Program-made: the position numbers and the translations under genes
Assembly (NCBI RefSeq): GCF_037042905.1
Contig: NC_087246.1
Coordinates: 31,248,001-31,312,000 of the forward strand
DNA: 64,000 nt
From: Lytechinus pictus
Taxonomy: Eukaryota
Direction: 5' to 3'
Shown here: piece after piece, positions 247 to 64,000 of the stretch
Numbering within the stretch: the stretch's first letter is position 1
Layout: each line of letters begins with the position of its first letter
Notes under the pieces: model-generated
Databases searched by the model: none
Seen by the model: only the letters and a program-made list of their open reading frames with translations
What the model was told of the DNA's origin: nothing

Positions 247-3200
247 CTTTGTTTTTGGATAATGAAAGAGCAATCTCGTCATTGTTGTTTAGAACTCTCT
301 TCTTCCCTTTACCTTGAAAAGTGTGGAATAGGAAAGGGTTGAATAAAGTTAATTGATTGTCTGCTTAATTTGTGCGTTTTTATAGTAGGCCTACATGTAC
401 AACAAACGACATCATGACGAGGCCTAATTTTCATTGCTGTCAACAACTTTTTCATCAATAACCCCTGCATTAACTGAGAAATAAAGTTTCTTGCCTGTAT
501 TCTGAAGTCATGGTTTACCTATGTGCTAAAATTATGGGGAGCCAGAAATTCAAAAATTCTGCTTATAATGTATATTTCTTATATTTACTATTTTGTTTCC
601 CTTAGCTTTCATAATGAAGAAAATATTTCAGTTATCATTCTGAGACAGTTATAAATGATTTTAATGTCATAATCTGAGTTAATAAATTAAACAGGTACTA
701 ACAGAGATTTGTGCCCAATTGGCTCTTCATTGTTAAACCACAACTTTGTACCAGGGTTTAATTTAAAGCCGAGTTCAGAATACGGGCCATTGTGTGTATG
801 ACTACATGTACATGTACCATCCGATTTAATAGTAGTTTTGAATGGAAAGAGGCATGAAAACAGCCCTCATCCAAAAAAAATATTATTTTTCCCCCGAAAT
901 GGTATTTCAAGTTATTCTCAAGGGCAGTAAGTGAAAAAAATTTGGCATATGTATTAATAGAGGAACAGACAAATACTCTCAGTAAGAACTAGAAAGCTTT
1001 TAAAGAGAAATCCCAGTAGTTGCAGTAAACACTGATTTCATGAGAAAGTCTGTAAAACAAGGCTTAATTGTCAGTATATCATCGAGGATCTAGATCTGGT
1101 ACAGTTACATAAACTGAACTTTGTGAAATCATGAAATCTACGCTGAAAAATGTTCAGGCTGAAGATCCCCAACACAGATAAGCACACGTGGGACAGTGTA
1201 TAATTATTGCTTCGAATGTCGGGCCCGACGCTCTACCCGAATCCTGTGCTTATTTGCTGATTTCTCAGCAATTACACAATTTCTTCCAGAATCCTTTGGC
1301 ACATATGTTTTATTTATACAAACAGACACTTTGGTGGTCATTTCATTGGATTCTGTACGAACCCATTTTGATATCGTTACCAAAACTAGCATTTACCTTT
1401 AAGTTCCCCTAAAAAGTATATTCATGGACAGTAAGTGGGAGTATTCTCAACAATGAAAGAGAACAGGAAAGTTTTGAAAACTGTAACCTCCAAACAGAAT
1501 TTTGAAGAAATCCCCCAAACAATTAATGAGGTATTTTAAGGGCAGTACATGGAGGTGATAGATTTATGTTGATATTACAGAACAGGAGAAAAACCTCTGT
1601 ACAGGTTTTTATACCTATGATAAATAGGGTAATATGTACATGTATTTCAGAGGATTGAACACAGACATTCAAGCTTCTTGTGAAATATCATGAGAAAAAA
1701 AATTGCACTGACTTGAAGATAAAGGGGGAAGGGAAATACAAGAGGGAAAAGAATACAAAATATACATGAGATTCTGATTTCACCATTGATCCCTAAACTT
1801 TGATAATAAGTCATTGTTTTTGTTATTTCAATGTTGTTATTTTCCCTATAAAGAGATCTACATCAAAGACCTTACTTTAGCTTCTTACCAATCTTTTCTC
1901 CATTCACAAAGGTGCCATTTGAGCTCCTATCTTCAATAAAGTAGAAACTGCAATTATCGTTTGATTCCTGGAAAACACAAGAAGAATTATTAATGCAACT
2001 TTTGATATCAGGACTGCCATAATGAAAATGTTTTGTTTTACAATTTTAAACTGAAACTTTTTTTTTTCAAATGAACTTTTAACATCCTGTGTGATGGTAT
2101 CTGAATGACTGAATCTATAATAACAATTGATAGTCAGTTTATTTCATGTTGAATGAAAATACCTTCTAAAAACATTGTGGACATTTAGCTGAGAAGAAAT
2201 ATTTTCATAAATTAATTATGTGTTACTTAGTCCATACTAAAATGGAAGAGCACCATGACATTGAGCATTTACAAGTTTAGTTGATAAATCCCATTCCCAT
2301 GACATTACCCAATCATAACAATGAAGAATGATTTTTTTTAGGTATAAGCCTACTGCCTACATCTTGTAACTCCAGTAGATGACAGGCATTGAGGGTGGTC
2401 ACCTACATTGTATTTCCTCACCTTAAATATCCTGAAATGTGTTTTGCTAAGTGTCTGGTAGCAGGGATTTCTGCTTATCTCGGGGCTGTTGTAACAGATG
2501 TCACAAGAAGGATCCCTTCCAAAGAGGTATTCTTCCTTTGGATCTAAGAAATCTACAATTTTCATTTAAAAAAGAGAGAATAAAATGAACAAAATGAAAT
2601 ATGGTTGCAGTCTTGCAGATTCAATTTATTGTCCTTTTACTGTACCATGGCCTGGATATTCAGTAAATATTATGTACAAAAGATGAAGGCGCGTTTGATG
2701 CTGATAGAAATGATAGCAACTCAACACCTATCACCAATAAATAATAATACACCTCCACCTACAACTCATAAAACTTTTCTTAATCACATCTGTTGTGGAT
2801 AGCTTAATTACCACTTGAGAGTCATACAGATCATACTATAAAATAGAACTTAAATATGGGGAAGTTCACCCTGGTGAGTTTTTTTTTCAATAAGCAGATA
2901 AATATTAGTAAACATGCGACTAAAATCCACAAAGAATAAGAGTTGTGACTTTTTTTTTTGGGGGGGGGGAGGCCATGATGTGGCCAATACAAATTCAATA
3001 AATTGCAATTTTCAAGGATTCATGCCTACTGAAAAAAAATATTGAAATTTGTCTAATATACTATAATACTGAATATTCAGTTATAACTATTCTGGTTTCT
3101 AATTATTCTATTTATTCTATGAAAGTCTAATCATATCAGAATCATTTGTTGATCATCAACAAAGCGTTTAAAAAGGATTGAAAACCTTGCTTCTTAAAAA

Positions 3201-4316
3201 AAGCTTCAACTGAAAATACTATTGAATTTCAAATGTTCATTAGCCATTACTTAGAATAAGTAAAAATTGATGTTTTCGATTTGTCCATCAGCACCTAGCA
3301 CAGTAGATGCATGTGTGAACAATTTGTTAGAGTTAAGCCAACTGTTTCAAATCGAGTTTGGATCAGATCATTCAGATGTGTACAACACAGCGAAAAGCTG
3401 AGCCTGAGGTGACTCGGCTCTGCCTATTTCATTCATTTTTCAACAAATATAAAAATCTTTAAAGTATTTAAACTACCACTTCAGGGTGCTACATAACTTT
3501 TTAGAAGCACTTTCCCAGTCGGGCAAGTAAATTTTTAAATAGTTGGAATATACTTGCCCAAAAATGTATTTCACTTGCCCCAAAAAATCCTTGAAAAAAA
3601 GTTTTACCTCTTCAAATGAAAGCATTGTGGATTTATAAACCATTGAACTTCTAACTGATGTAGACCTTTCCAAAGTGATTTTATCTTACCTGCTACATGT
3701 GACCAAAATTAGGGTCGATATCATATAAAAAATGTGGACCCTAATTTTCCACTGTGAGAAATTGGCTTTCCCAGTTTGGGCAAGTAGTTTTGGTCTTAAC
3801 TTCAAAACACTTGCCCGACTCTAACTTTTACTTGCCCCGGGCAATAGGGCAAGTACAGATTTTTGCTGACACTGTTTGTAAGTGTTTAGAACTTAGTTTA
3901 GTGACTGATCTCTTGATTTTATAGCCTAACTTACGATGAAAGTATGGTATTGTATTTGTAGGGGCTAGTGACAATGACCTGCACAACTAGTATTAAATTA
4001 TTACTAGTACTACATGTATATTGCCTTTATTCATTGGCAATACAAGTAAATTCTAATATTTAGGATTAGAGGGTTTATATTAGTATTAGAACTAGAAGTC
4101 AGACCTACCAACACTCTTAAAACATTTTCCAATAGGATACAGACGACCCCAAACAACCACCTTCTCCTCCACAAAATCAAAATCTCCTTCAGCAACCTCC
4201 TGCGTTGGAATAGTCTCCATACTCGACAAAGTTCCCCCGGATGACAGACTTGCACTCGCACTGCTCGATGTGGTGTTGGGCTCTACGGAACTCGAGCTCG
4301 AGCCGTTCAAGCTCAT
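247..4316 (-). CDS. CHEK2: Checkpoint kinase 2, 5' part (SQ/TQ region and FHA domain); gene continues beyond window start
   Basis: Exons 4316-4109, 2552-2422, 1967-1889 and 312-247 join in phase with GT-AG sites: MSLNG...SSGGTLSSMETIPTQEVAE...VWGRLYP...EYLFGRDPSCD...[59 protein letters not shown]. Matches the Chk2 T68 motif (human SSGTLSSLETVSTQEL) and FHA signature (GR..S.H..SxNGTFVN). Confidence 0.95.
1004..1398. mobile_element. TTAA-flanked non-autonomous DNA transposon (Kolobok-like), family A
   Basis: TTAA|AG...CCT|TTAA ends with imperfect TIRs; diverged second copy at 21314-21702. Confidence 0.65.
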
Positions 4317-4919
4317 GTCGCACACACATGCAGTAGTAAACACGGGAACGCCGGGCCGAGTGCGCTACGTAAGTGCTCAGCGGAAACTCGAGGCTAACCT
4401 CCGCCACTCTGACCCGGCAGATGTACCGTGACGTAGGTATCCAATCCGGCGGCACGAAATACTGCGGCGCGAGATTCAGGAACACTGCCACTGGACTATT
4501 TCCTTGTTGAGTCCATCTTTGAATTAGCTCATTGGGTAAGAAGATGACATCAACAATCCAATAGTTTCTGCAAATTCAATGAACTTCAAAACAACTTCTT
4601 TCGTTTGATTTTGAATTCTGCAAGCAAAATCCAAGTAATTGTCAGTTCTTTGGGGTAAAAATCCAAAACACACCGTATCGCAGGCCTAGTTCTAATCAGC
4701 TGACAAACCACGTGGCGATCGCGCGTTTGCGGTCAACGACCTTAGGGTATATGTATCCGGATGATATGCGGATCCAGGATTTCGATCAGCTAGGGGATTC
4801 CCAATTATTGATCATGATCATTGACCCCGGGGGCCTCATTGACAGGCGGTACGTCCAGAGAAAAGATAAAAGTCATGGCATTTCCCAGAATATCGATTCG
4901 ATTTTGTCATATCTCTGAG

Positions 4920-5187
4920 CAGACGCAGATCCAGGGGCACGTGCCCCCTATGCCCACCCCCCCCCCCTTTTTGAGAAGCAAAATTAGAATTTGTAATGTA
5001 AAAATGCCCCCTCTTTTGAAATAGAAGACCTTTTTTTTTTTTTTGCTTGTCAAAATTTTTCGGGTTCTAAACATCCTTAATTTGTGGTTGAAAACCTTTA
5101 TTTTTTTTTTGGGGGGGGGGGGCTTGTCAAAATTTTCCTTCGAAAAATTTGCCCCCCCCCCTTTGGAAAATCCTGGATCCGCCCCTG
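4920..5187. mobile_element. hAT-like MITE
   Basis: Termini CAGACGCAGATCCAGG / CCTGGATCCGCCCCTG; imperfect 8-bp TSD TCTCTGAG/TCTCTGGA. Confidence 0.6.
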
Positions 5188-7681
5188 TCTCTGGATGTTA
5201 GAAAAATAAAGGAGCTAAGACAGTGTTCAGAAATATACTGCTTCCCTAAGATTTCAGAAAGGTGGCCCAGGGGCAAGAGAGTTTACGAACTTCGGGGCGC
5301 GGCTGCGGGAGACGTTTCCACCCACATTTTTGGTCTGACAACTTTATTTCATTCTGATTGGCGGAGAAGCACATGCAGTTCCTTTCTGTAGGAAAGCATA
5401 GGCCTACTTTGTCGTATTCCGATGGTCATTTCATAAACGACAACCCCCCCCCCCCCCCCCCCTCTGCTGTAGCTTTCACCTACAACAAAGACATTGGGAA
5501 ACATTTTGTATATACAAAAATATATTTAACCTCTGCCTTTTCCTTTTTAATAATATTTTTGTACATTTTTTAACCTCTACGGCCCTGCAATTTTTATCTC
5601 TGCCCCAGTCCCCCCCCCCCGTGTTCCCTCTGCTGTACGGATCCACATGCATGCGTCATGAAACCTAACACTAAAACCATGAAGGATATGGAAAAACATG
5701 TATAATAAGGCCTTCATGGTAGCCTACACTTATATGCCTATATGTAAAGGTCTATGAGTGTAGGTTCTCAGGGACTTTTTTTTAGAAGGGGCGTTGGGGT
5801 GTTGGGGGTCAATGGCATATGAGCCAAACAAATTTGAGGGTCCATAAATGGCATGTGGAGCAAAATAAATTTCTAAAAAAGCAGCAAGTGAGCAAAATTT
5901 TAGAACTTTTTTACACAAATATCTAATTTTGTGATGGATTTCGACATAATGCTAAAAAATATTATTATATTCCACCCCCTTTCCTTTTTTTTTTCTTGGC
6001 TGTGAAACTTGTGGGGGAGGTTCCATGGTCCCTTAAGCCCCCCCTCCTTACATCAGTTGGGTAGGGTAGTCCTTGAGACTGAAGTCTTATAAGTACAAGC
6101 TATATCTTTATTTTCACAAGAAGAATAGGTAATTCATAAGAACTATTTAATCAGTAATACGAGCGTGAAGCACGAGATGAAATTTTTAATAATAATAATA
6201 TTAGGCATTTATATACGCCATCAATCTAGAAATAATCTATTCCGAGCCGCATTGTTTAATATTATTATTACCCCCACTTTATTTTAGCTCGAGCTGCCTT
6301 TCAGCGCTAATTGCATTCAAGAAATTAATCCTATATACCGGATACCCATTCACCTCACCTGGGTTGAGTGCAGCACAATGGGGAAAATTGTTTTGGAAAA
6401 ATAGAAAACTAAACAAATTTTGATGGAAAATAAGAAAGAAAAACTGATGGTTATCATGCATTTTCATATCACTACCATCATGGGCGGAAATCCCAGAGGA
6501 GACAGGGGAAGCCCCCACCCCCCCCCCCCACTTTATGATATGTTTTATGCCGGAAAAATACTTCATTCAAAAACGAAATAATACATGTATCCTTGAATCT
6601 TTAATATAATATCATTTTCTGAATATTATGTCAAAATCTATAACAAAATTAGATTTTTGTTATAAAACTATTGAAATTTTTGCTCGCTCGCCTAGCTCTC
6701 TTGCAACTTTTATAAATTTTACCCAATATGTGCCATATCTAGCCCCCAAAAAGCACTCCTCTTGAAAAAAAACATATTATGATCATCGATCATCTTCAAC
6801 TTCCTCCTTATCATCATAATCATACTTGCCATATAATCAGTATGATATTATTCTGTAAATTATCGCGGGATAATACAGACCACCCCTTTTATTATATACA
6901 TATTTTTATTTGATAGCATTTATTCCATTCATCATAAAAACCAGAACAAAACAAGGTACATGCAAAGTTAACATATATTACAATTTATGTCAATGAAATA
7001 ATTCAATGATACAAATCTGGAAAACATTTGAAAAAAAGAGTATATATAAATGAATGGGGAGGCAACTAGAAAGGCAAAGCCTTATTAGTGCTGCCACCTT
7101 TACAAAACTGGAAACTGAATATGTAATGTAATAAAAATGTTAATACTGAATACCAGATATAAACATTGAGCATAAAAAGGGGGAAATACAAATTTTGACA
7201 CAATGACAAAATATATAGACATAGATGTATATCAACAATAATTACTATAAAAACGAAAGAAGAAAAAACACCTGAATATACGTTATTAGAATATTTGCTT
7301 AGAAGTTGGGTTTTATATCTCCTTTTAAAAACATTAAATGATGGACTAGGTTTAACAGAAAATTGTAATTATTCCAGATAATTGGTTCTTTGCTAAAGAA
7401 GTGCTTTTTTTAGTTAGGTGGAAGTCTGAAGATCCTTGCGTATTATAATAATGAACATCTATGACCCAGTAGCCACTGATCTGTATCTAGTCTATATAGT
7501 GTAAAGATTAGTGGATCAAACTGGAATTCTATGTAAAACTGAGGCAAATTTTCATGTCGGTCATAACTGAAAGATACCATACCGAAAACTTGAATAACAA
7601 TGCACAAAAGAAAATGATTGGGACTACATAACAAGCTCGCTGTAGCCTTCCGAAGACGCGACCGAAAGACCGAAGAAGACA

Positions 7682-10600
7682 ATGGAAGTGTAAGTATTTG
7701 TTAGGGAATATGATAACAAACATCTCATTTTGTTATGCTGTATGCACGAAAGGTGATTTTTATTCTACTTATTTAGTCAAATTTATTTGGCGTGTTTGGA
7801 AAAGCAGAGTCGGACGTCGGTGACGTGCATGTGTGACTGTGGCCATGGTGCCGTGGTTGTGTCTGTGAGTGAGTGTGAGTGAGTGAGTCTCACTTGCACT
7901 TGTCTTACCCCTTTCATAAACCCAATCATGCGGCTAATAGCAGCATAATTTGGTTGTAAAATCGGAGGAGGACCAGAGTTATCCGCTTCATTTTGATGCT
8001 GCAATTATCCGCATAATAGCGGCATCGGGACCAGATTTTGACTTTATGAACGCATGTCCAAAGTACAATTACATGACATACCGTTGGCGTTATAGATTAT
8101 ACGGATAATTGCCATGCCCATGGCATGATGGTGCGGTCACAACTCACAAGGTCACCCTTTTCCAACACAACTGCATCGGAGGGGGTGTGTGCGGTTGCCA
8201 TGACGATTATCCCCCTTTTTCAGGACGGGCGCTCGTAAAAATAGTGCGGATTATTTTCGGAGTTTGTGAACGCAATTTTTATTGAATTATCCGCATTACT
8301 CTTAGCCTTAGGCTTAGGCGGCTAATTAGAGGATGGGTTTATGAATATGAAAGGGGTATCAGACTCAGATCAGTGAGTCTGACTGATGTGACGTTAACCC
8401 GGTCCCGGGGAGCTACGGCCCGCTTCACGGGCCGGAGCCCTGGGGGCCGTTTCATCAAGCTGTTCGGAAGTTAAGAGCGACTTTAAGAATGACTGGTGAA
8501 CCTTTCTTACGCGCTTAACCATCACCAATGAATATACCATTTTCCACAAGAAAGGATCACCAGTCGTTCTTTTAAAGTCGCTCTTATTGTCTTAACTTAA
8601 CTTATGAACAGCTTTATGGAACACAGTGACACACCCGGACTCGTCCATGTAATTAGCCAGGAGGCTCTAAGTCCTAGAGGAGTAGAGAGCTAAAATCATT
8701 TACTAACGTATGCTTACTCTCCAAGGAGCCAGGGATTCCATCCCATTCATCTGCGTGTACCGCCAAAAAACCTGAAACTTTCGCCCCCGAGATTTCTACT
8801 TTCCTTCCAAGCATGGGTACTCTCCAAAATAGGGTAGAATTAGCCTGGAGGCTTCTGGAGAGTAAAAGTCATCTACTATACGTAGGCTTACTCTCCATGA
8901 AGCCTTGGTCGGGATACCATTGCTCTACACATACCGTAGGTGTTCCCACGGTGAAATTAGACCTAAATCACACATTTTATTAGGGTTTTGAGCCCAAACT
9001 AACGTAAATGGGCCAAAACAATATTTACCCCTGAATATGATAACGTTGCGTCTATTTATTCAGTAAATAGTAGTAAATTAGAGAAATTATTAAGAGTACG
9101 AGCGTTTACTTACCCAGTCTGTTATTTTCGCCGTCTTTGTTATCGATACCTAGATACAAGACGCGTGTATAGAGGGCGACAATATCATGAGCAGTGCCAA
9201 TTTAGATTTTAAAAAAATACTTGCATCGGCCGATAAATATCATGAATCGTTAAATACTTGCATTGGCCGATAAATATCATAAATCTTTTATGATATTTAT
9301 CGGCCGATGCAAGTAAAAATAAAAATATATGTACATGTAGAATGAAGTTTTTGCTTCCTTGTATTTTAAAATGAAGGGTTCATTTTTCTTTTATTTACAG
9401 GATCAAAGAAAGTGCTGCTATGTTGAGCAACTTTGAGGTGAGTAATTTTAAGTTACCCTCAAGCTATGGTGTTGACTTTTGGTTTTGATAGCATAGTAAG
9501 AATGCTGTCACCAGTTGTGGTGGGGTGTAAAAATAAATCGGTCTGTATAAAGTAATATTTACACTGAAAATTGAGAAATACATGCTCAAACACACATTTT
9601 GAAAGAAGAATGATTATGTACTATGATTATTTTGATTAGAGTCACCAGAGAATTACATGGAAAAGGCACCTTTTTTATGCCAGAATATTTAGTCATGAAA
9701 GAGTGTATAAAATAAAGTGTCTGATGCTATATCAAATGCACAGATAAAATTGTTTTCAATTTTCTGACAAATTAGAATAATTTAGATTTTATTACTGTTG
9801 CTGGGGAGCTACTTGCATGTGATGTCACAAAATTAAACTTTAACCGATCTGTATTCTTATTCCTGAATGGATTTTTCCAAACCTTCATTAATACATTTCC
9901 CTAATTTTCTGCTTCTATCCAAATCAAATTGATATCAGGGTTAACTTTCCTTTAAATTTACCATTTCAAAGACAGAATACAGAATGTGATGCCCTTTGAC
10001 CCCTATGCCTTGAACCAGAGTTTCCAACTATTAAGAAAAGTCATATTTTTTATGATTTTCATGTCAAATTACGCCATTACACTTTTGGCCTTAATTATTA
10101 CGCTTCTGAGTTATAGTAGGTATGTACACATTTAATACACGCATAATAATACATCGTGCAGTGGTGATATTTACTTACCTGACTAGGCAAGCTAGTGCTT
10201 TACAAAAGTTATGTTGCACCCTAGATTAATATTCCTGACAACCGTCCTGTTGGGTTGGAAAAACATTGCATTTATGCACATTGTGCATCTGTTCTATATA
10301 CCTCTAAGAAATTTATCATACTGTGTGGCACATATGAAATTATGACTTATCTCACAGTTATGTCTTTTGAGCTGCTGGAGTACTACTTGCAGCTCTGTTG
10401 AACTTTCCATCTTTCTTTGATCTTTCAGGTCCATGCTCTGCTTAAAGAATTACAATCGGGAAGCTCTCAGAGAGGGAAGAAGAGCATCAGTAAAAAGCAG
10501 CAGAACCTTGCCACAATATCCTATGAGGTATGTTATGTAACTATTCTAAAATCAGCCTGTTTGAGACTTATCCCAAGTACATGTAATCTTGGGATGTAGT

Positions 10601-41612: not shown

Positions 41613-44600
41613 TTAAAATGCTCGATAGACCCAATGATACCTAGACTCATCCACAGGGAAGATTCCTTCCGAACCTATTATACATGGGAGACGAGGAGAG
41701 AAAAGCAAAATAGAGGGGGGAGACAGAGGTGAAGGGGGGGGGGGGAGAGATGGGGAGGGAGGCAGAGAGTGGAATAGAAGACAGAAGGGGGAAGTGATGG
41801 AGAGAGATGTACACAATAGAGGGAAGTGAAAAATATAGAATGGAGGAAAGAAATGAAAGATGGCGGAAAAATGGGAAGAGAGAATAAAATAGAAAAAATA
41901 GACAGAGGGATGGAGAATACGGGAGAAAAAGAGAGGGGGACAAAGGAAAGGTAAGAAAGGAGAAACAAGTACAGGAGAAAAGGGGGAAGGAGAAAGGAGT
42001 ACAGGAGGGAAAGAAAAGGAAGAAGGGAAAAAGAATACAAATGGGTGAGACAAAAGGGATTAGGAAAGGGAAGAATGAAGAAAGACGGAGAAAGACACAC
42101 ACAAAAAGAAATTAAAAAGAAAATAGAGTGGAGAAACAAATGAGGGGTTGGAAAGAAAGCAGAGAGATGATAGAAAAAGGGGGAAAGAGAGACAGGAGAG
42201 GGGAGAACAGAGAGAAGTTAAGAAAAAAAAAGAATACATAGATAAAGAAAAAAGAATCAGGAAAGAAGGAAAGACAGAAAGGGAAGAAGAGTGAAAGAAG
42301 AAGATGAAAGAATAGAGAGGTGCCAGATAGAGAGGTGAGTGAAGAGGGAAGAAAGAGGAAAACGGATGAGAAAGAAGGAGCAGAGAGAAAACGAAATGAG
42401 AGGTAATGGGGGCAGACAAGCCAAAAAAAAGAAAGGTAAAATGGTAAGAAGAAAAAGGAGAGAGAAGGGGTGACAGATGATGAGAGATGAGTAAAAATGA
42501 AAGAGGAAAAGGGAAAGAGAAGAGTAGGAAAGGAGGATGCAGATATGGAGAACAACAGGAACCAGAAGAGTTAGTATATATCCATATATTTGCTTACAAA
42601 TTTGGGTAAATTTGACATAAATCATAACCAAGATCGATGCTAAAGAATTTCATGTTTCGATAAGTTGACACAAGGACACAGTATAGTGTAGTACACAATG
42701 TTCTACTTCTATTGAGTAGTACATCATTTACATCATAGGTATGAGATGAGCAGATTCCAGATAGTCTTGCCTTTAGAACTGTTATCCATACAAGCAAAAT
42801 TTAGAAATCAGGGGGGTTTTTCACAAAGAGGTGCATGTGACTTCAATAAAGTCACGCTTACTGCTGGCATGCATATGATGTGTTACATGCAATCTTATCG
42901 ATTAATGCGCAGTAAATGCGCTTCCTCTTACAATGATTTTCCTAATCAACTGGACATTTAAAGCAGATACGAACCAATAGCAACATCTCGAGTCCTCAAC
43001 TACTCATACCTGGCCAGTCTCCTGACCCATAATGCTAGTGTAGTCTCGTAATATAGACCCACTTGAATGATAACATGCTAATTAACTACTCAATACATTT
43101 ATACCGCAATAATTATGTTACCAAGTAGCAAAACAATTACTTTTCTGGCTCTCAAAACATTTTAGTTTCTCCATTCAAATACAATTATAGGTCAATTTAT
43201 TCTTTGTAGTATTAGTAGATATCTGAAATATAGTTTAAGACTATGTATTTATAACACACAGTCAATGGGAGACCACACACAGTTCATTTCCCTTTTAAGT
43301 GCGTCTCTAAGTATACTTAACCCTTTGTGAAACACCCCCCTCATCATTTCAATGACATGACAGACATTTAGACCTACATAATATCATAAATCCAATGGCC
43401 CGTATTCTGAAGTCAGGTTTAACTTAAACTCAGGTTTAAAATTGTGATTTAAGTATGGATAGCCAATTGTTACATAAATTACTAACAGTAGAGATATCAT
43501 ATATTTGGCTCTTAAATCATTCATAATTGTCTAGGAAGTATAAATAGATGATTGTCTTCACCATCAAGGAATCAGGAAAGAGCACAGTAAACATCAGAAA
43601 CATAGAACTTCATCAAATTTTTGACACTTTTGGCTTCCCATAATTTTAGCACAGGGTTAAACCATGGTCTAAGGCAAACCTGACTTAAGAATACGGGTCA
43701 ATGAATTCAAAGAGCATGAAATATTCTTTAAAAAGGGGACTGATAAACCTATTATTTACTTACCAGTAGTGGCTAAGGATTGGTGATCATTCTCATCCAC
43801 TGTATATATTGACCAATAGAGACTGTTGGCATTATCATTCATGATGTCATTGATTGAAGTAATATAGTTGCCAAACTGGGTTACTTTAGATTCAAAANNN
43901 NNNNNNNNNNNNNNNNNNNNNNNNNNNNNNNNNNNNNNNNNNNNNNNNNNNNNNNNNNNNNNNNNNNNNNNNNNNNNNNNNNNNNNNNNNNNNNNNNNNN
44001 NNNNNNNNNNNNNNNNNNNNNNNNNNNNNNNNNNNNNNNNNNNNNNNNNNNNNNNNNNNNNNNNNNNNNNACATTGCATCAATGTTGTCCGATATTCAAA
44101 TGTCATTGTCAATTCCATCCTAAAATAAAATAAAAATTTGCTTGAGGATTAAACTGGGGTAAATGGTTATTACTAAAAGCAGTACAGATTCATATACTAC
44201 ATTTAAAGAGATTCCAATAAAGTTGATTTTCTTTATCAACATATTACATATTGTAGCGCATAGGAACATGCAATCTGCTATGTATGATGCGCTATAAAAG
44301 AGCCTAGTATTATCAGCTAGTTGCTGGCTGTTGTGGATATAATCTTATGAATTTATAATGTGGACATTTAGCACTTACAGTTGAGGCCAAAAGTTTACAT
44401 ACACCCTATTCAGTGAAATTTGTTCACTTGCCAAACATCGTTAAATTCACTATCAGAAATATAAATACTACCATGACGAAGTTGGAATCAATGACAGAGT
44501 GTATTAAGCTCTTTCACATAATTGGGACACTGTTGGGATTCAAATATATTTCAGGTAGAATTTTCTTTCAAGAAAAAAAAATAATATTCATGCCAAATGT

Positions 44601-57047: not shown

Positions 57048-58278
57048 ATGGCGTTAGTTTGTTCAAGTAAGCAAGTATTTCATTCAATTATTTCACCGTC
57101 ATCATGCCAATTCCGTAGATTTTTTCGAGGATTCTTTTGGATTGATTTATTAGATTTGTATGATAATAATGATGTTATACGGTTTGCTTTGAATGGGAAA
57201 TTGTAGGGAATGCGATGTTTCGGATTCTTGTGGCGTAGTTTTGATTTCGGTCCCATCAATGCTTTTCAGCGTATGGTCGTGTTGATGTTTAGGCGCCAAT
57301 GCAGTTTCGCACCGGCCGACTTCGTCTTCGAGATAATTTCCCCACCAGTAATTGTTCGAAAATATCATAGCAGCCAGGTCTCTCAATCACATTTCAACTT
57401 CAAGATCAATACATCCAGCGCTTTTCCGGTTGGGCGCTAGTGTAGTTTCGCACCTCCCCATTTAATGGTTTTCAAACATGTACAAAACTACAATCTCACC
57501 CTAAATTATAAATAATTCACAACCTAAAAATTTGCATCTGAGCCTCCAAAGTCCAGTAGAAGTTGAATATTTGCCGTTTTGACACTTTTTTACAAAGTTT
57601 TACACCTATTTCGGAATCACTCGGTCGCTTGATCAAGCTCAGCGCTGCACATAAGCAGTCGGTACGCGTACAGTACGTACCACCTAGTGAAGTGTGTGTG
57701 TGTATTTGAGTTTTGTCAGACGTGTATCAATCAGATATGATTATTTACGTCTGGGACCGACCTTTAACGTCACCATCCGAAAGACGTGACCAGGGCTCGA
57801 ACCTCTGCATCAAATTGTAACTTCCCCGCATAGCTTGGATTACAGGCGCACGCCACAACTTCTTCTTCTTCTTCTTATGTTTGTTTGAGTGGCGATTAGT
57901 CATATTTGACTATTGTCGCCATTGACATTATTAATAAAAAATCTCACTTCTCACATAATAATATTATTACCAATATGATGTATACATATATAAAATATTT
58001 TTTTTGTATCCTTCTGATATGAAAGAGGATAATTATGATATGTACAAAAGTTTGCAGTAACTCTTGTCAAAATGGCATATAAACAAAACTTCACCAAAAA
58101 CAAACCGCTATCTTCAGCTCAGTTCCAACTAGTTGCGCTTGCCCTGCCCTTTCAAAGATGCAATCATACCGGTCAGCACGGTACATTGTGCCGATTTTTC
58201 GGACATAAATGCCTAGGTCACCCATGCATAGACGAGGGGGCGCTAGTGTACCTGTGCTTACAGATGGGTTAAACATTA

Positions 58279-58310
<32 letters not shown>

Positions 58311-61300
58311 CAACACCAACAACAACAAGGCGAAAACACTTGTGGGCTTTGTTAGTTATATGTGCAGAACATATCATTTTGTATATATTATATCATACAT
58401 TATTATGTATATATATATATATATTCTTCTTTTCACATTAGACTTGTACAAGCATATCCATTCATATTTCTTATAGACAATACAATATTAAAATAGTACA
58501 TCACTCCTTACTAAAACGTTTCGTTCTTGAAACGAAACGTAAAAATGCTTTCTGTATCCCTGGGTCATCTTTTTTTAAATACTCCATTATTTGTCCTGGC
58601 TGTGATTCATTCAATTCTACAAGGAGCATTGATCTTTCAATTATATATTTTGGACAATGTAAAAGATAATGTCTGACAGTTTCTAGCTCAGGACATCTAT
58701 CACAAAACCCTGTTGGATGGATCCCTAATCTTAGTAGATCTTGGTTAAGACCAGCGACTCCAAAACGGAGACGATGGAGTACAGTTTCCTGTCTTCCTAG
58801 ATTACATTTATATGTGGATAGCACTGATGGTTGCAATTCTTTCAGTGCTGAGTTAGTTTTATTCCATCTTTCTTGCCAAATTATCTTACAACTTTTTGAA
58901 ATAAGTTGCATAATTTCTGATAATGTTATTTGATTATGAATTTCTATTTTGTTTGATAAAGCTTTTTTTGCGCAGGAGTCTGCTATTTCATTTCCTTTTA
59001 TTCCACAGTGACCAGGGATCCACTCCAGGTATACCTCTATACCTTTATATTTGAGTCTTGTACTAATAGTTAGAATTTCTGTAATGATAGGATCGTCTTT
59101 CCGATTCTGTAAAGATAAAAGTGCACTTAATGAATCACTGAAAATAACAACACCTGTATATATATCTAAATATTCTATCCATTCCAGTGCGAGAACAATC
59201 GCAATTAATTCAGCCCTATAGGAGGACGTGAAATTCGATAGTCTTTTGCCTTGGTAACAGGAAAAATAAGGTACATAAAAAGCAGCTGAGCAACGCCCAG
59301 TTGTGCAAGAAGAGCGAGTTTTTCTATGGTATCTTCAAAAAGATTTTTTCCCCTCTTTCAGCTTGCACCAAGTATTACGGTAGTGGTTGTGCAGAGTGGT
59401 TGATGTTTGTTGTGTGAAGGTATGTGTGTGGGGTGTGCGTGTGTGTGATTTTTTGAATGAAATGTGAAAAATGTGAATACACGTAGATTTAGCGATGAAA
59501 TAAGAAATAATAATGTAGAGCCTTGTTTTGAACTCTAGGTCAGCTCAGAGAACTTTCCTTCAGTTTACACTCTGCACAACCACTACCGTAATACTTGGTG
59601 CAAGCTGAAAGAGGGGGAAAAAATCTTTTTGAAGATACCATAGAAAAACTCGCTTTGGATTGATGGATTACTGTACAAACTCACTCAATGTGGTATAGGA
59701 GGAAATATGTTACATTTTTTAGAAAATTATCTAACAGAACGTACCTTTCAGGTAAGAGTTACAAATACTGAATCCAGAACATTCCAAGTCCATAGCGGAC
59801 TCCCCCAGGGGAGTGTTCTGAGTCCCCTTTTATATAATGTCATGATGAGAGATATTCCAATTGATCCTGAAGTGACAATATCCATATATGCTGATGATTG
59901 TGCAGTATGGTTTTCTGGAAAAAATGTAGAGAATATTAGATTAAGGATACAAACTTATCTAGATGTATTATGTACCTGGCTTAAAGACTAGGGCTTCAAT
60001 TTTTCTATTGAGAAGACTGTTCCGGTATTTTTCACTAAGCTCACAAACGTTACTCCTCCAACAGTCAAGTTTGAAGGGAGTATACTCACTTATAAAAATA
60101 ATCACCGTTTCCTAGGAATGATATTTGATAGTAAATTGTCTTGGCATCCCCATATAGAGAACGTAGTTTCAAGAAGTAAAAGGAAATTAAATATATTGCG
60201 AAGTTTAACAGGAACTAAATGGGGGAGTTCATCTAAGTCCTTACTTATGGTTTACAGGGCAATTATTAGATCAATTTTTGATTATGGTTGTCAAGCTTAT
60301 GATAGTGCTCCAGTATCTACAAAAAAATTGTTAGACTCGGTGCAATATCAAGCACTCAGAATATGTGCTGGTGGGCTGCCATTAACATCGCTAGTTTCAC
60401 TGCAGGTGGAAATGGGAGAACCCCCTTTAGATTTAAGAAGGCAAATGTTATCAAGCAAGTATAGACAAAATATAGAAAGACATAATAATCACCCATTAAT
60501 AACACGTATCAAACCATGCTGGCAGTTCGATTATCTTAAAGGTAAGAATGTTAGTAAACCGTTTGGTTATAGGCTCCAATCCAAGATAGGAAAAGAAATT
60601 AGTATCGAAAATATTATTTCTCCATCCTTTCCCCCTTGGTTATTTTGTCCACCAGTTGTATCTACTGAATTGAGTTCACAAATCAAGAAATCGGATCATC
60701 CAATACAATTACAACAATTGAGTTTGGAATTGATACATACAAAATGGTCACACCAACTCCATATATACACTGATGGATCCAAAGCCCCTGAAAAGGGGAT
60801 TAGCTCAGCTGCTTTTTATGTACCTTATTTTTCCTTCTACCAAGGCAAAAGACTATCGAATTTCACCTCCTCCTATAGGGCGGAATTAATTGCGATTGTT
60901 CTTGCACTGGAATGGATAGAAGATTTAGATATATATACAGGTGTTGTTATTTTCAGTGATTCATTAAGTGCACTTTTATCTTTACAGAATCGGAAAGACG
61001 ATCCTATTATCACAGAAATTCTAACTATTAGTACAAGACTCAAATATAAAGGTATAGAGATATACCTGGAGTGGATCCCTGGTCACTGTGGAATAAAAGG
61101 AAATGAAATAGCAGACTCCTGCGCAAAAAAAGCTTTATCAAATAAAATAGAAATTCATAATCAAATAACATTATCAGAAATTAAGCAACTTATTTCAAAA
61201 AGTTGTAAGATAATTTGGCAAGAAAGATGGAATAAAACTAACTCAGCACTGAAAGAACTGCAACCATCAGTGCTATCCACATATAAATGTAATCTAGGGA

Positions 61301-61782
61301 GACAGGAAACTGTACTCCATCGTCTCCGTTTTGGAGTCGCTGGTCTTAACCAAGATCTACTAATATTAGGGATCCATCCAACAGGGTTTTGTGATAGATG
61401 TCCTGAGGTAGAAACTGTCAGACATTATCTTTTACATTGTCCAAAATATATAATTGAAAGATCAATGCTCCTTGTAGAATTGAATGAATCACAGCCAGGA
61501 CAAATAATGGAGTATTTAAAAAAAGATGACCCAGGGATACAGAAAGCATTTTTACGTTTCGTTTCAAGAACGAAACGTTTTAGTAAGGAGTGATATGTGC
61601 TATTATTATATTGTATTGTTTATAAGAAATATGAAAGGATATGCTTGTACAAGTCTAATGTGAAAAGAATATATATATATATATACATAATAATGTATGA
61701 TATAATATATACAAAATGATATGTTCTGCACATATAACTAACAAAGCCCACAAGTGTTTTCGCCTTGTTGTTGTTGGTGTTG

Positions 61783-61814
<32 letters not shown>

Positions 61815-63963
61815 TAATGTTTAACCCATCTGTAAGCACAGGTACACTAGCGCCCCCTCGTCTATGCATGGGTGACCTAGGCATTTTTATGTCCGAAAAA
61901 TCGGCACAATGTACCGTGCTGACCGGTATGATTGCATCTTAGAAAGGGCAGGGCAAGCGCAACTAGTTGGAACTGGGCTGAAGATAGCGGTTTGTTTTTG
62001 GTGAAGATTTGTTTACATGCCATTTTGACAAGAGTTAAGACAAACTTTTGTAGACCGGTATACTATATTCATCGTTTTTATAATAGAAGGATGCACAAGA
62101 AAAATATTTCATATATGTATACATCATATTGGTAATAATATGAGAAGTGAGATTTTATAGATAAAGTCAATGGCGACAATAGTCAAATATGACTAATTGC
62201 CACTCAAACCAACATAAGAAGAAGAAGAAGCTCTTCTTGCACTTCACTAGGTGGTACGTACTGTACGCGTACCGACTGCTTATGTGCAGCGCTGAGCTTC
62301 AAGCGACCGAGTGATTCCGAAATAGGTGTAAAACTTTGTAAAAAAAAGTGTCAAAACGGCAAATATTCAACTTCTACTGGACTTTGGAGGCTCAGATGCA
62401 AGTATTTTAGGTTGTGAATTATTTAGGGTGAGATTGTACATGTTTGAAAACCATTAAACGGGGAGGTGCGAAACTACACTAGCGCCTCCGGTTGTACTGT
62501 AGAGTAAAGTGCCCAAATATATAAATTTTGATATCTAAGACTAAGACTAAGTAAAGACTAAATCTATAAATGTAATTATTTACTTACCAAACGTAGCCAG
62601 GCGGCTTCTTGAGAGTAAAAATCATTTACTAACGTAGGTTCTCTCAATGAAGCCAGGGAGTCCTTCCTATTCATCTGCGTGTACCGCAAAAAAACCTGAA
62701 AATGACCCCGAGATTTCTACTTTCCTTCTAAAACATCTAGCCATAAATCATGTACATGGGATAAAACTTCATTTCCGACATTTCTACGCTCTCGTTGTTA
62801 TTTTTAAACAAGAATTCATCAAAAAAATGAAAAATATTGTGAAAAGACGGAAGAGACTTGCCCGATGTTTACGCCGCCATCTTGTTTCTTATTGTACTTC
62901 CCCAACGTTACGGACGCGAGCGTCGCGTAACGTTGGGAAAGTATAAAGGATAAAAAAATTCTATGGATTCACATAGCCTTTGACATGACAGGACTGCTGA
63001 TATTTCACAACCACACACAGAAACTTCAACTATTCAAGTTTCAACAATAAAAAATCTGACATTTATCAAAAAGCAAACCCTGAAATGATCTGAGAATGTG
63101 GCCAAACATGGAAAGAGCTTTCAAAATTTTCAAATTATCAACAGATCTGAGCTCATTTTGAGCGGATTTTGTTGCATTTCGGAGATAAAGGTTGAAATTG
63201 AGTCGGATTTGAGCTAAGTTTACAATGTTGATTTTTCTGTACAAAACTAGTAACCTAAGTTATTGTATATTTTGACGATGCTACAATTCGTTAAGTGAAA
63301 GTAAGGCATTGCTTGGACTGATAAATCTGTTTCGGAGGAGGTTTTTCAACATTTTTTTTTTTTTTTTTGCCCTCGTACACGGAGGATGACGGCCATTGGG
63401 CTCGTAGGGGTGGAGCTCCACCGACGTCTTAACTACAGCGTCTATGGAGAAAAGGGTGCAATTTTGCACCCTCCTCGATTACTCCTAAATTTTGCTTTTT
63501 GACGGGGGAGGGGGAAGAAAGAAATGATGAAGATAAATTTATATTAAATAAAATCAGCTTACCAAGGTGGTAAGCAGAGCATATCCCTGACAGAAATAGA
63601 CTAGATTTATCGGTCTAGGCATTGCCTTGCAATTATATCCTACAGAAAGCCTTTCTGAAGTCTTCGCTTCACCTTCGTTCCAAGCAAACATCCTTCTACA
63701 TTTTAATAGAATTTTCTTTTTCTTTTTTAGAGTGTATCCTAATTTCCTAAAAATGCCCCATTAATTTCACACTGTATCCAAATTTCCTTCTTTTTTTGTT
63801 TGATCTCTTTAAGTCTCTAATGAGGTACCTGAGGTTCCTGTCGTATCACCAGCATCAGGTCGAGTCTTTGAGAAGAGACTAATTGAGAAGTTCATCTCTG
63901 AGAATGGCACTGATCCTGTCAATGGAGAACCTCTTTCTGAAGATCAGCTGATTGAGGTCAAAG
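57048..63963 (+). CDS. PRPF19: Pre-mRNA-processing factor 19, U-box exons; gene continues beyond window
   Basis: Exon 57048-57066 plus exon 63814-63963: [56 protein letters not shown], matching human MSLICSISNEVPEHPCVSP... Confidence 0.95.
57695..59302 (-). mobile_element. SINE with 7SL(Alu-domain)-like head, split into 59302-59291 and 57859-57695 by a LINE
   Basis: Rejoined across a CAAC duplication: AACTGGGCGTTGTGGCGTGCGCCTGTAATCCAAGCTATGCGGGGA...GGTTCGAGCCC...TCTTTCGGATGGTGACGTTAAA...ACTCAAATA(CA)n; GTG duplicated at its own insertion site. Confidence 0.8.
57860..59290 (-). mobile_element. 5'-truncated I-group (Nimb/Ingi-like) LINE copy: RNase H part, CCHC finger, 3' UTR, (AAG)n tail
   Basis: Reverse complement of 60804-62230 with scattered substitutions; ORF 58501-58911. 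Confidence 0.9.
59655..62230 (+). mobile_element. 5'-truncated I-group (Nimb/Ingi-like) LINE with RT, RNase H and CCHC zinc knuckle
   Basis: Frame 59656-61593 with one nonsense codon (TAG 59989-59991): [57 protein letters not shown]; 3' stem-loop and (AAG)5 tail. Confidence 0.92.
62593..62900 (+). repeat. Uninterrupted copy of repeat X in PRPF19 intron 1
   Basis: Colinear with the fragmented copy at 27677-33040; contains CGCCGCCATCTTG. Confidence 0.7.
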
Positions 63964-64000
63964 GTTAGTTAATCTTTGAGATTTCTCAAGAGGGTTCTTA

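Follow-up and report, generated by a model that had tools for sequence, protein, structure and literature searches.

Organization of the PRPF19 Locus

We analyzed a 64,000-nucleotide stretch of the Lytechinus pictus genome (RefSeq GCF_037042905.1, contig NC_087246.1, positions 31,248,001 to 31,312,000), hereafter called the window, in whose coordinates all features are given (Table 1). The first two exons of PRPF19 lie near its downstream end, and a Prp19 domain is encoded on the same strand 436 nt past it. Exon 1 ends at 57066 and exon 2 starts at 63814, and the first intron therefore spans 57067-63813. RNA reads with loose ends at 63814 continue there into exon 1 letters, and this exon 1-exon 2 join bears out the location in PRPF19 intron 1 given in the original prediction. 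A 5-kb element occupies 75% of that intron, and RNA reads indicate that the gene is expressed and spliced across it.

The element is a palindrome whose collinear inverted arms, defined by a repeat search and by MAFFT alignment of the left arm with the reverse complement of the right, cover 57433-59298 and 60796-62486. Of the 1881 columns in the arm alignment, 1622 match, 54 mismatch, and 205 contain gaps; a short interspersed element (SINE) present only on the left accounts for 165 of the gap columns. From outside to inside, the arms pair an outer terminal inverted repeat (TIR), a segment of a long interspersed element (LINE; 57860-59290 on the left, 60796-62230 on the right), and an inner TIR, and their longest perfect block is about 220 bp (222 bp at 58207-58428). 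The whole 5054 bp is bracketed by a matching 8-bp target duplication, and the inverted-arm structure is far beyond chance expectation. The 5-kb palindrome predicted earlier is thus real, by its collinear arms and flanking duplication, and the sub-coordinates proposed for its TIRs and LINE segments hold in both the repeat search and the alignment.

Table 1. Features of the PRPF19 intron 1 element and adjoining exons in the window.
Feature	Positions	Strand	Remarks
PRPF19 exon 1, coding part	57048-57066	+	MALVCS plus 1 nt; GTAAG donor at 57067
Left target-site duplication	57425-57432	.	TCCGGTTG, 8 bp; other family copies also have 8-bp duplications
Left outer TIR	57433-57694	.	At least 189 genomic candidates; 90-95% identity to other copies
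SINE, 3' part	57695-57859	-	7SL/tRNA-like, (AC)n tail; inherited with this MITE subfamily
Left LINE, L-type	57860-59291	-	5'-truncated; (AAG)6 tail at 57859-57876
Putative conversion tract in left LINE	58207-58428	.	Probable source, right arm 61665-61886
SINE, first 7 nt (59292-59298), and decayed inner SINE target duplication	59292-59305	-	Joined directly to the remaining SINE where copies lack the LINE
MITE inner part	59303-59654	.	Inner TIRs 59303-59398 and 59568-59654 around a centre of about 170 nt
Right LINE, R-type	59655-62230	+	5'-truncated inside RT; at J_R with a 2-nt duplication (CT); RVT_1 59707-59991; ORF 60118-61593 with RNase H; internal A23 at 61786-61808; (AAG)5 tail at 62216-62230
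Right outer TIR	62231-62486	.	Matches the TIR of unrelated copy L007 at 100% identity
Right target-site duplication	62487-62494	.	TCCGGTTG, 8 bp; matches left copy
PRPF19 exon 2, U-box region	63814-63965	+	Supported by sequence and spliced RNA reads

A Foldback MITE With a Resident SINE

The backbone of the palindrome is a foldback miniature inverted-repeat transposable element (MITE) of about 870 bp, with about 65 further copies elsewhere in the genome. Comparison with 11 of these shows that in the canonical element the outer TIR abuts the inner TIR directly. Canonical copies are many, short (770-1250 bp), and without coding capacity. The terminal 53 nt of the TIRs are 98% complementary, and one 22-nt terminus is present in every copy examined. 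The window element and most other complete copies examined have an 8-bp target duplication, the exceptions being two that fit 8 or 9 bp, one with a mismatch, and one that lacks a duplication. This length is compatible with hAT, P, or Merlin elements, and the nTnnnnAn pattern of hAT was absent from the duplications of the copies examined. Conserved termini, 8-bp duplications, and high copy number together substantiate the DNA-transposon backbone with long TIRs that had been proposed.

In at least eight other MITE copies the same SINE, with a duplication of about 10 bp, occupies this TIR position uninterrupted, so the SINE is older in the left arm than the LINE that now splits it. We considered whether 11 nt at the 5' junction of the left LINE might be insertion filler, and found them to be the first 7 nt of the SINE followed by the decayed SINE duplication. 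Another MITE copy (C7:45.3 Mb), with the SINE in both arms, was considered as a further instance of copying between arms; the SINEs there are different variants (95% identity), and the pair is therefore not a recent conversion.

Two LINE Insertions From Two Subfamilies

The 1.43-kb repeated segment was originally called a LINE, and domain searches confirm this. The window LINE contains a reverse transcriptase domain (RVT_1, E = 2.8e-11) and an RNase_H domain. A longer copy in a MITE at locus C15 combines RNase H with the same reverse transcriptase (E = 4.8e-38) and, upstream of it, an APE-like endonuclease (Exo_endo_phos_2, E = 1.8e-17), which both window copies lack owing to 5' truncation. 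Genome-wide, 156 intact 3' ends were found, belonging to copies of 317 nt to more than 4 kb whose shared 3' sequence runs into (AAG)4-6 and whose targets vary. The element is an APE-type non-LTR retrotransposon with RNase H, identified by its reverse transcriptase, its endonuclease, and its dispersed copies. One candidate annotation placed the LINE 3' end at the internal poly(A) run (61786-61808) and treated the next 420 bp as separate sequence; it was rejected, as most of the 40 copies scored continue to (AAG)n.

The two window copies belong to different subfamilies, here called L-type and R-type. The left LINE is 99.0-99.7% identical to copies at four other loci (L029, L031, L032, and L036), and the right LINE is 99.2-99.5% identical to copies at seven unrelated loci (L014-L017, L019, L020, and L033), whereas left and right are only 96.6% alike. 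In about 70 diagnostic alignment columns, made up of substitutions and several multi-column indels, the left copy has the L-type state and the right copy the R-type state. The copies also differ in tail length, in 5' truncation point, and in target position: the left LINE sits 7 nt from the SINE 5' end with a 2-4 nt duplication, about 24 bp off the mirror of the right-hand site, and each 5' junction is unique in the genome. Judged from these sequence differences, the two LINEs are independent insertions from two subfamilies of one family, as the original prediction had proposed from the copies' unlike junctions, truncations, and substitutions. Its further claim, that both LINEs had entered TIRs, stands for the right copy; the left copy entered the SINE already within the MITE arm and not the TIR itself.

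These data bear directly on two ways in which a single LINE integration might have given both arms. The first is one insertion into one TIR followed by inverted duplication, or by arm-to-arm conversion of the whole insert, and it draws on the collinearity of the arms, the 222-bp perfect block, and an identical A23 run. It is contradicted by about 62 of the about 70 diagnostic columns, which differ between arms, by the higher identity that each arm shows with unrelated loci (99-99.7%) than with its counterpart, and by the offset target positions, the location of the left copy within the SINE, and the unlike tails and 5' ends. We consider it refuted for the insert as a whole, where it is extremely improbable; copying between arms survives only as a short conversion tract. 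The second is twin priming, in which one LINE would have integrated with an inverted 5' segment. In L1 biology this is a recognised route to adjacent inverted LINE segments. It is already refuted here because there are two tails: the 3' region is common to both copies, and each ends in a separate (AAG)n. They are moreover of different subfamilies with 350 bp of MITE between them, leaving twin priming a next to negligible chance.

A Probable Short Gene-Conversion Tract

Within the otherwise L-type left LINE, all eight diagnostic columns between 58302 and 58423 are R-type. The perfect block around them is 100% identical between arms over 222 bp and includes the A23 run and one G that are common to both arms and occur in none of the 16 other copies compared. 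We suggest that this block is the product of a later right-to-left gene conversion between arms, with a minimum tract of 58302-58423 and a maximum of 58211-58459 (122-249 bp). The evidence for conversion comprises the eight diagnostic columns, one shared private substitution, and the length of the A-run. A recombinant L/R source copy formally stands as an alternative to local conversion. A palindrome born by duplication has arms derived from one another; here the arms carry different LINE subfamilies and share the 222-bp tract only.

The conversion tract also bears on whether the structure could be an assembly artefact, either a foldback chimera or a switch between haplotypes that each carry one LINE. 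No short-read contig from run X15 spans the element, and both LINEs are young and could be polymorphic. Foldback artefacts, however, give identical arms, and here the subfamily, the junction, and the SINE all differ; matching 8-bp duplications flank the element; and a tract with the private variants of the right copy implies that the two LINEs coexisted, most simply in cis. On balance an artefact seems quite unlikely. The placing of both LINEs in cis depends on the assembly together with the conversion tract.

A Probable Retrotransposition Hot Spot in the Right Arm

The right LINE lies at a site, J_R, with the sequence CTCGCT^CTCTTCTTGCAC. A LINE occupies the same nucleotide in four MITE copies (the window and the loci C5, C15, and C7), compared with roughly 2.5e-5 expected. 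The window, C5, and C15 copies share one 3' junction and the (AAG)5 tail, and the C7 junction is a diverged form of it; the first-strand nick falls at one position in all four, and the 5' flanks end 0-4 nt apart. The inserted LINEs are of different lineages: the C5 copy is L-type, the C15 copy is R-type with a 10-nt deletion common to unrelated loci, and the window copy is R-type without that deletion. J_R is thus a probable retrotransposition hot spot, used on this evidence by at least three LINE lineages. The independence of the C7 event is less secure, that copy being older and more diverged.

The LINE is nevertheless a dispersed element. Only 4-5 of its 156 3' ends lie within the MITE, four of them at J_R, and J_R is a secondary hot spot because of this small share. 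The remaining 3' flanks are diverse and dispersed, and in this set of 156 we did not find the concentration of nearly all copies at one target that marks a site-specific LINE of the Tx1L or R1 type.

Three of the four LINE-bearing MITEs also carry a SINE in the opposite arm (Fisher p = 0.007), an excess that could hint at shared ancestry instead of recurrence. Shared ancestry is opposed by the variation in LINE lineage, 5' flank, and SINE arm. One version of it would be a MITE-plus-SINE-plus-LINE composite mobilised as DNA, the LINE length differences among C5, C7, C15, and the window then being later internal deletions. Such a history would fit the SINE excess, the 3' junction and tail identical at three loci, and the separate 8-bp target duplication of every composite. 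It does not fit the differing LINE lineages, the SINE arms, which are different variants, or the unique 5' junctions of the window copies, and it would need each deletion to start within 4 nt of the LINE 5' junction. We regard composite mobilisation as quite unlikely. The original prediction had raised the possibility that the window composite could itself be moved as a unit; there is no sign that it has, because both of its LINE 5' junctions are unique in the genome. We also rejected the idea that a LINE source copy had carried the outer TIR along by 3' transduction, all four loci being complete MITEs with their own 8-bp duplications and with inner-TIR sequence at the LINE 5' junction.

Two candidate causes of the hot spot were evaluated at the sequence level. 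Annealing of the LINE tail to the target was dismissed: AAGAAGAG, the end of the priming strand at J_R, is of the same sense as the tail RNA and does not complement it. A search for extended homology between the LINE 3' UTR and the MITE returned a 12-nt match only. A third idea is that an arm interrupted by a SINE or some other insert yields an asymmetric hairpin or cruciform (or a nick near the junction) that directs target-primed reverse transcription to a fixed nucleotide of the opposite arm, and to the junction itself. We offer this as a tentative possibility, on the doubtful side. Were it correct, the mirror arrangement would not be luck, and foldback elements might grow into long LINE palindromes and anti-LINE hairpin-dsRNA loci, a consequence that we hold just as tentatively.

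A Predicted Pre-mRNA Hairpin

Both arms lie in one intron and are predicted to be able to pair as dsRNA. Folding of the sense RNA gives a minimum free energy of -3293 kcal/mol with 1629 inter-arm pairs, among them 20 perfect runs of at least 30 bp and a longest helix of 217-220 bp, in line with the earlier expectation of a pre-mRNA duplex exceeding 1.5 kb. In a sample of about 6% of three ribo-depleted libraries, with reads placed on 57860-63859 and those below 92% identity left out, the arms were covered at 0-3x and showed no A>G cluster at that depth, paralogous copies being a confounder of any A>G signal. Reads that join 59651 to 62230, as expected from an empty J_R, fit any of 117 empty arms elsewhere in the genome (about 131 MITE arms were counted) and cannot be assigned to this locus.

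The original prediction saw in the hairpin a potential substrate of ADAR or Dicer and a source of small RNAs against the LINE family. It might be a selected functional locus, giving rise to anti-LINE endo-siRNAs or, through ADAR or Dicer, regulating PRPF19 splicing. The predicted duplex itself speaks for such a role, as do proteins with an A_deamin domain, encoded at four genomic loci, and a host gene that is expressed and spliced across the element. Against it, the composite is found at this locus only and is young, its divergence from sister copies being below 1%; RNA reached 0-3x on the arms in the libraries sampled, with no A>G cluster at that depth; and insertion bias alone explains the structure. 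A selected function is therefore very unlikely, and the simplest view is of a recent cluster of intronic insertions that is neutral or slightly costly and perhaps polymorphic.

A Model for the Origin of the Palindrome

Taken together, the sequence evidence suggests, with a probability that we put at about 85%, that the palindrome is a nested transposon cluster and not the product of duplication. We propose the following series of events. A foldback MITE of about 870 bp, from a subfamily that already had the SINE in one arm, would have entered PRPF19 intron 1 with an 8-bp duplication. An R-type LINE encoding APE endonuclease, reverse transcriptase, and RNase H and ending in an (AAG)n tail would have entered the right arm at J_R by target-primed reverse transcription, and an L-type copy of the same family would have entered the left arm separately, 7 nt inside the SINE. 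As both LINE 3' ends point outward, the inverted copies would have lengthened the MITE TIRs into 1.87-kb arms. Finally, right-to-left gene conversion over 122-249 bp would have made the 222-bp perfect block. The sequence itself records the MITE insertion, both LINE insertions, and the conversion; the order given here for the two LINEs, and the placing of the right LINE's entry after the arrival of the MITE in the PRPF19 intron, are presumptive.

Relationship to Known Systems and Significance

Intronic inverted retroelement pairs, such as inverted Alu pairs, form dsRNA that is a substrate of ADAR and MDA5 (PMC11263572, PMC8313407). The PRPF19 element resembles these in having two retroelements of one family in opposite orientation within one intron and a predicted long pre-mRNA duplex. 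Unlike Alu pairs, which are about 0.3 kb, its arms measure 1.87 kb and were built on a pre-existing DNA-transposon hairpin; the host gene is that of an invertebrate deuterostome, and its duplex is a prediction from folding.

The closest parallel for J_R is the Xenopus non-LTR retrotransposon Tx1L, which targets the DNA transposon Tx1D (PMC6719617, PMC1635306). As far as these accounts describe Tx1L, both are APE-type LINEs with recurrent insertions at a fixed position within members of a DNA-transposon family. Tx1L is described there as essentially site-specific, whereas the window LINE is dispersed; and, unlike the Tx1L target as so described, the window LINE's target lies within a TIR, so that hits in two arms are mirror images.

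The MITE itself recalls foldback or long-TIR class II elements such as Drosophila FB and Galileo of the P superfamily (PMC3573991, PMC4168063). Nearly the whole element is TIR, copy length is variable, and the target duplication is of fixed length, at 8 bp compared with 7 bp in Galileo. Unlike FB and Galileo, the MITE TIRs showed no internal tandem repeats.

Large palindromes, including those of sex chromosomes and the inverted repeats of plastids, undergo arm-to-arm gene conversion. The PRPF19 element shares with them a non-reciprocal transfer between inverted arms that would have produced a perfectly identical block. It differs from them in that one short tract appears converted, the arms were probably not born by duplication, and homogenisation is minimal.

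The locus offers an example of how a kilobase-scale hairpin may arise without a duplication step: a LINE hot spot inside a TIR is present twice in mirror image, and repeated hits therefore make inverted LINE pairs. J_R is used by an otherwise dispersed LINE and is enriched where the opposite arm is already interrupted, making it a substrate for asking whether DNA structure or endonuclease preference sets LINE targets. The PRPF19 element, with its 1.6 kb of predicted duplex, is a candidate for presence/absence polymorphism with effects on splicing or dsRNA.

Architecture of the palindrome

The palindrome was recovered both as a series of collinear complementary blocks and as one continuous arm alignment. 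The blocks found by inverted-repeat search of the window range from 57433-57485 / 62434-62486 on the outside to 58485-59298 / 60796-61609 on the inside and are 93-100% identical. When the left arm is aligned by MAFFT with the reverse-complemented right arm, the main break is a 165-nt segment that the right arm lacks. Across 57433-59298 this comparison yields 1622 matching and 54 mismatched columns plus 205 gap columns, with 20 perfect runs of at least 30 bp (longest 217 bp). The composite is a genuine structure whose history is well resolved. Elsewhere in the window, 43898-44070 is a run of 173 N, either masked sequence or a gap.

The backbone is a MITE; at least 189 candidate matches to its outer 262 bp occur across the 811-Mb genome. 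A blastn comparison of the region with 11 of these loci revealed whole elements of ~770-1250 bp, in which the outer TIR (57433-57694 / 62231-62486) directly adjoins an inner part (59303-59654) that in turn forms a hairpin (59303-59398 against 59568-59654). Target duplications of the family are 8 bp long, represented here by TCCGGTTG at both ends, and sequence spanning the insertion point is found without interruption 117 times in the genome. This canonical anatomy, together with the duplications and the 117 empty arms, indicates that the window holds a single ~870-bp foldback MITE carrying inserts of 1.6 kb in the left arm and 2.6 kb in the right arm.

Features, insertion junctions and LINE copies at J_R, the LINE insertion site in the right MITE arm (junctions in LINE sense)
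Feature	Position	Strand	Description
PRPF19 exon 1 coding start	ATG 57048		MALVCS; GTAAG donor after 57066
PRPF19 exon 2	acceptor 63813		acceptor directly before exon 2 coding sequence
Right LINE insert	59655-62230	+	RVT_1 59707-59991; intact 491-aa ORF with RNase H
Empty site			CTCGCT CTTCTTG CACTTCACTA GG
Right-arm junction (J_R)			5' flank end CTCGCT, LINE + (AAG)5, 3' flank start CTCTTCTTGCAC; 2-nt duplication
Left-arm junction, first part			flank through CTTCTTGCAC, decayed SINE target duplication, SINE head (7 nt)
Left-arm junction, remainder			LINE + (AAG)6, rest of SINE ending (AC)n, TTCACTAGG
J_R LINE, window			R-type without 10-nt deletion; 2576 nt; 5' flank end CTCGCT; opposite arm: SINE with nested left LINE
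J_R LINE, C15	13088684		R-type with 10-nt deletion, common to unrelated L016/L017; reaches endonuclease region; 5' flank end AAAAACT; opposite arm: SINE
J_R LINE, C5	45594310		L-type; 317 nt; 5' flank end CTC or CTCGCT; opposite arm: SINE
J_R LINE, C7	20316045		older R-like copy; 1124 nt; 5' flank end AAAAACT; opposite arm: 5.7-kb insert ~35 bp further out

Two independent LINE insertions

The limits originally assigned to the LINE copies are correct, and an APE-type endonuclease is additionally present in a longer copy on contig 15. Genome-wide there are 156 intact LINE 3' ends; most of the 40 copies scored continue past an internal A-run to a shared 3' terminal sequence followed by (AAG)4-6, with diverse 3' flanks that often begin with TT and tiny target duplications of 0-4 nt. 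A 12-nt string, TACACTAGCGCC, that forms the MITE terminus (62475-62486) recurs unchanged in the LINE 3' UTR (61843-61854). Kept in all LINE copies aligned, it is the sole link between LINE 3' UTR and MITE terminus, and may be a coincidence or a transposon end captured long ago.

The original prediction placed a LINE in each TIR, which holds for the right copy at J_R; the left copy lies inside a pre-existing SINE. The same SINE is found uninterrupted, at the same TIR position and with a ~10-bp duplication, in at least eight other MITE copies (as well as outside the MITE); the left LINE is therefore nested in a SINE already carried by the MITE subfamily. It entered ~24 bp away from the position that mirrors J_R. 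The SINE (57695-57859 plus 59292-59298) has a 7SL/Alu-like head (GGCGTGCGCCTGTAATCC) followed by a tRNA-like B box (GGTTCGAGCCC), and a 7-nt GAACCTC duplication varies between SINE copies of different MITE lineages. One MITE copy, at 3032-4170 of locus L041 (G000:C7:45308800-45316300), carries a SINE in each arm, at matching positions; the two are different variants (95% identity), so the element may be a recombinant of two.

The shared 1.43 kb was aligned with 16 other genomic LINE copies. The right copy is 99.2-99.5% identical to unrelated loci of one subfamily, R-type (L014-L017, L019, L020, L033), and the left copy 99.0-99.7% identical to those of another, L-type (L029, L031, L032, L036), versus 96.6% between the two. 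About 70 alignment columns, comprising substitutions and several multi-column indels, split the subfamilies, and almost without exception they assign the left copy to L-type and the right copy to R-type. Together with the differing target positions, tail lengths and 5' ends, these columns bear out the proposed independence of the insertions and exclude duplication or whole-insert conversion as the source of the second LINE.

Probable arm-to-arm gene conversion

Within the left copy, 58302-58423 is R-type at 8/8 diagnostic columns, with L-type columns on either side. This tract coincides with a perfectly matching inter-arm block of 222 bp (58207-58428 / 61665-61886), which contains a pure A23 run of equal length in both arms, as well as a G common to both and absent from 16/16 other copies compared. 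The pattern is best read as right-to-left conversion of 122-249 bp that would postdate both insertions, and it also speaks for the presence of both LINEs in cis.

A recurrent LINE target within the TIR

The exact right-arm junction of LINE tail and TIR recurs on contigs C5 and C15, and a diverged form on C7. All four hits lie in complete MITEs, each with its own 8-bp duplication, and share a fixed 3' junction while their 5' flank ends differ by 0-4 nt. These flanks, the differing LINE lineages and the different SINE-arm variants in the window, C5 and C15 indicate that the hits are not copies of one event. Given 156 LINE 3' ends, ~131 arms and 8.1e8 positions, ~2.5e-5 hits are expected at the J_R nucleotide, against 4 seen. 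The opposite arm carries the SINE in 3/4 hit elements versus ~9/~65 elements overall (Fisher p = 0.007). Annealing of tail to target does not fit as the reason for the favoured sites.

The C15 composite (L037 5999 to L033 8962; G000:C15:13077998-13088961) spans 10,964 bp between copies of the 8-bp duplication GCCGATTG. One MITE arm holds the SINE; the other has, at J_R, a long LINE with endonuclease, RT and RNase H regions. Its LINE reading frame is broken near L033 5012-5082, and ~5.8 kb separates the inner TIR from the endonuclease region. The C7 opposite-arm insert (L035, G000:C7:20314000-20323999, 3630-9365) lacks long ORFs, has a ~8-bp flanking duplication (CGCGTACC) and is probably another DNA element.

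A possible second recurrent site lies outside any MITE, at C4:2169008, where the (AAG)n-tailed 3' end of a LINE-related element adjoins the SINE at the nucleotide that the left LINE uses in the window. Here (L044, G000:C4:2164000-2173999, ~4853-5100) the SINE head continues from TTGTGGCG onward with (AAG)5 directly before it, preceded by a LINE-like 3' stem related to but distinct from the window LINE. This junction reflects either repeated targeting or a template-switch chimera.

Genomic context, hairpin RNA and mobility

The predicted location in PRPF19 intron 1 was substantiated by the donor and acceptor, by RNA reads ending at 63814 that carry exon 1 letters, and by a Prp19 domain on the same strand 436 nt beyond the window end. 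The composite occupies 75% of this intron (57067-63813). In exon 2, position 63827 is G in 72/72 RNA reads of three runs and A in the assembly, a synonymous change (GTA to GTG, Val) for which a strain difference is the simplest explanation. Immediately to the right of the palindrome, and within intron 1, 62594-62943 is a different, expressed repeat family of high copy number, with RNA depth of 5-20x on both strands, contig depth >1000 and many reads continuing into unlike sequence.

In the fold predicted in silico for sense RNA of 57433-62486 (-3293 kcal/mol), the arms form 1629 pairs with each other, including a helix of 220 bp without interruption. Genes with an A_deamin domain are present in the genome. 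In three ribo-depleted runs (~6% sampled), arm depth was 0-3x, comparable with or below unique intron sequence; at this depth an A>G cluster was not seen, and read assignment is confounded by paralogous LINE and MITE copies. Each LINE 5' junction is found just once in the genome, so nothing indicates that the composite has moved as a unit, a possibility raised by its intact termini.

Relation to known systems

Intronic inverted retroelements that form dsRNA are well known (PMC11263572, PMC8313407), as are foldback elements with dynamic TIRs (PMC3573991). Reports on Tx1L/Tx1D describe a LINE that targets a DNA transposon (PMC6719617, PMC1635306), and endonuclease preference and DNA structure have been proposed to act jointly in creating hot spots (PMC1635306). 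The present case resembles Tx1L/Tx1D in that a LINE inserts into a DNA transposon, but differs from these reports in that the LINE is dispersed and has a sharp secondary hot spot inside the TIR. Such a hot spot leads to mirror-image LINE pairs and long palindromes, and what is new is this combination of a dispersed LINE with a TIR hot spot, mirror-image pairs, long palindromes and a documented conversion tract.
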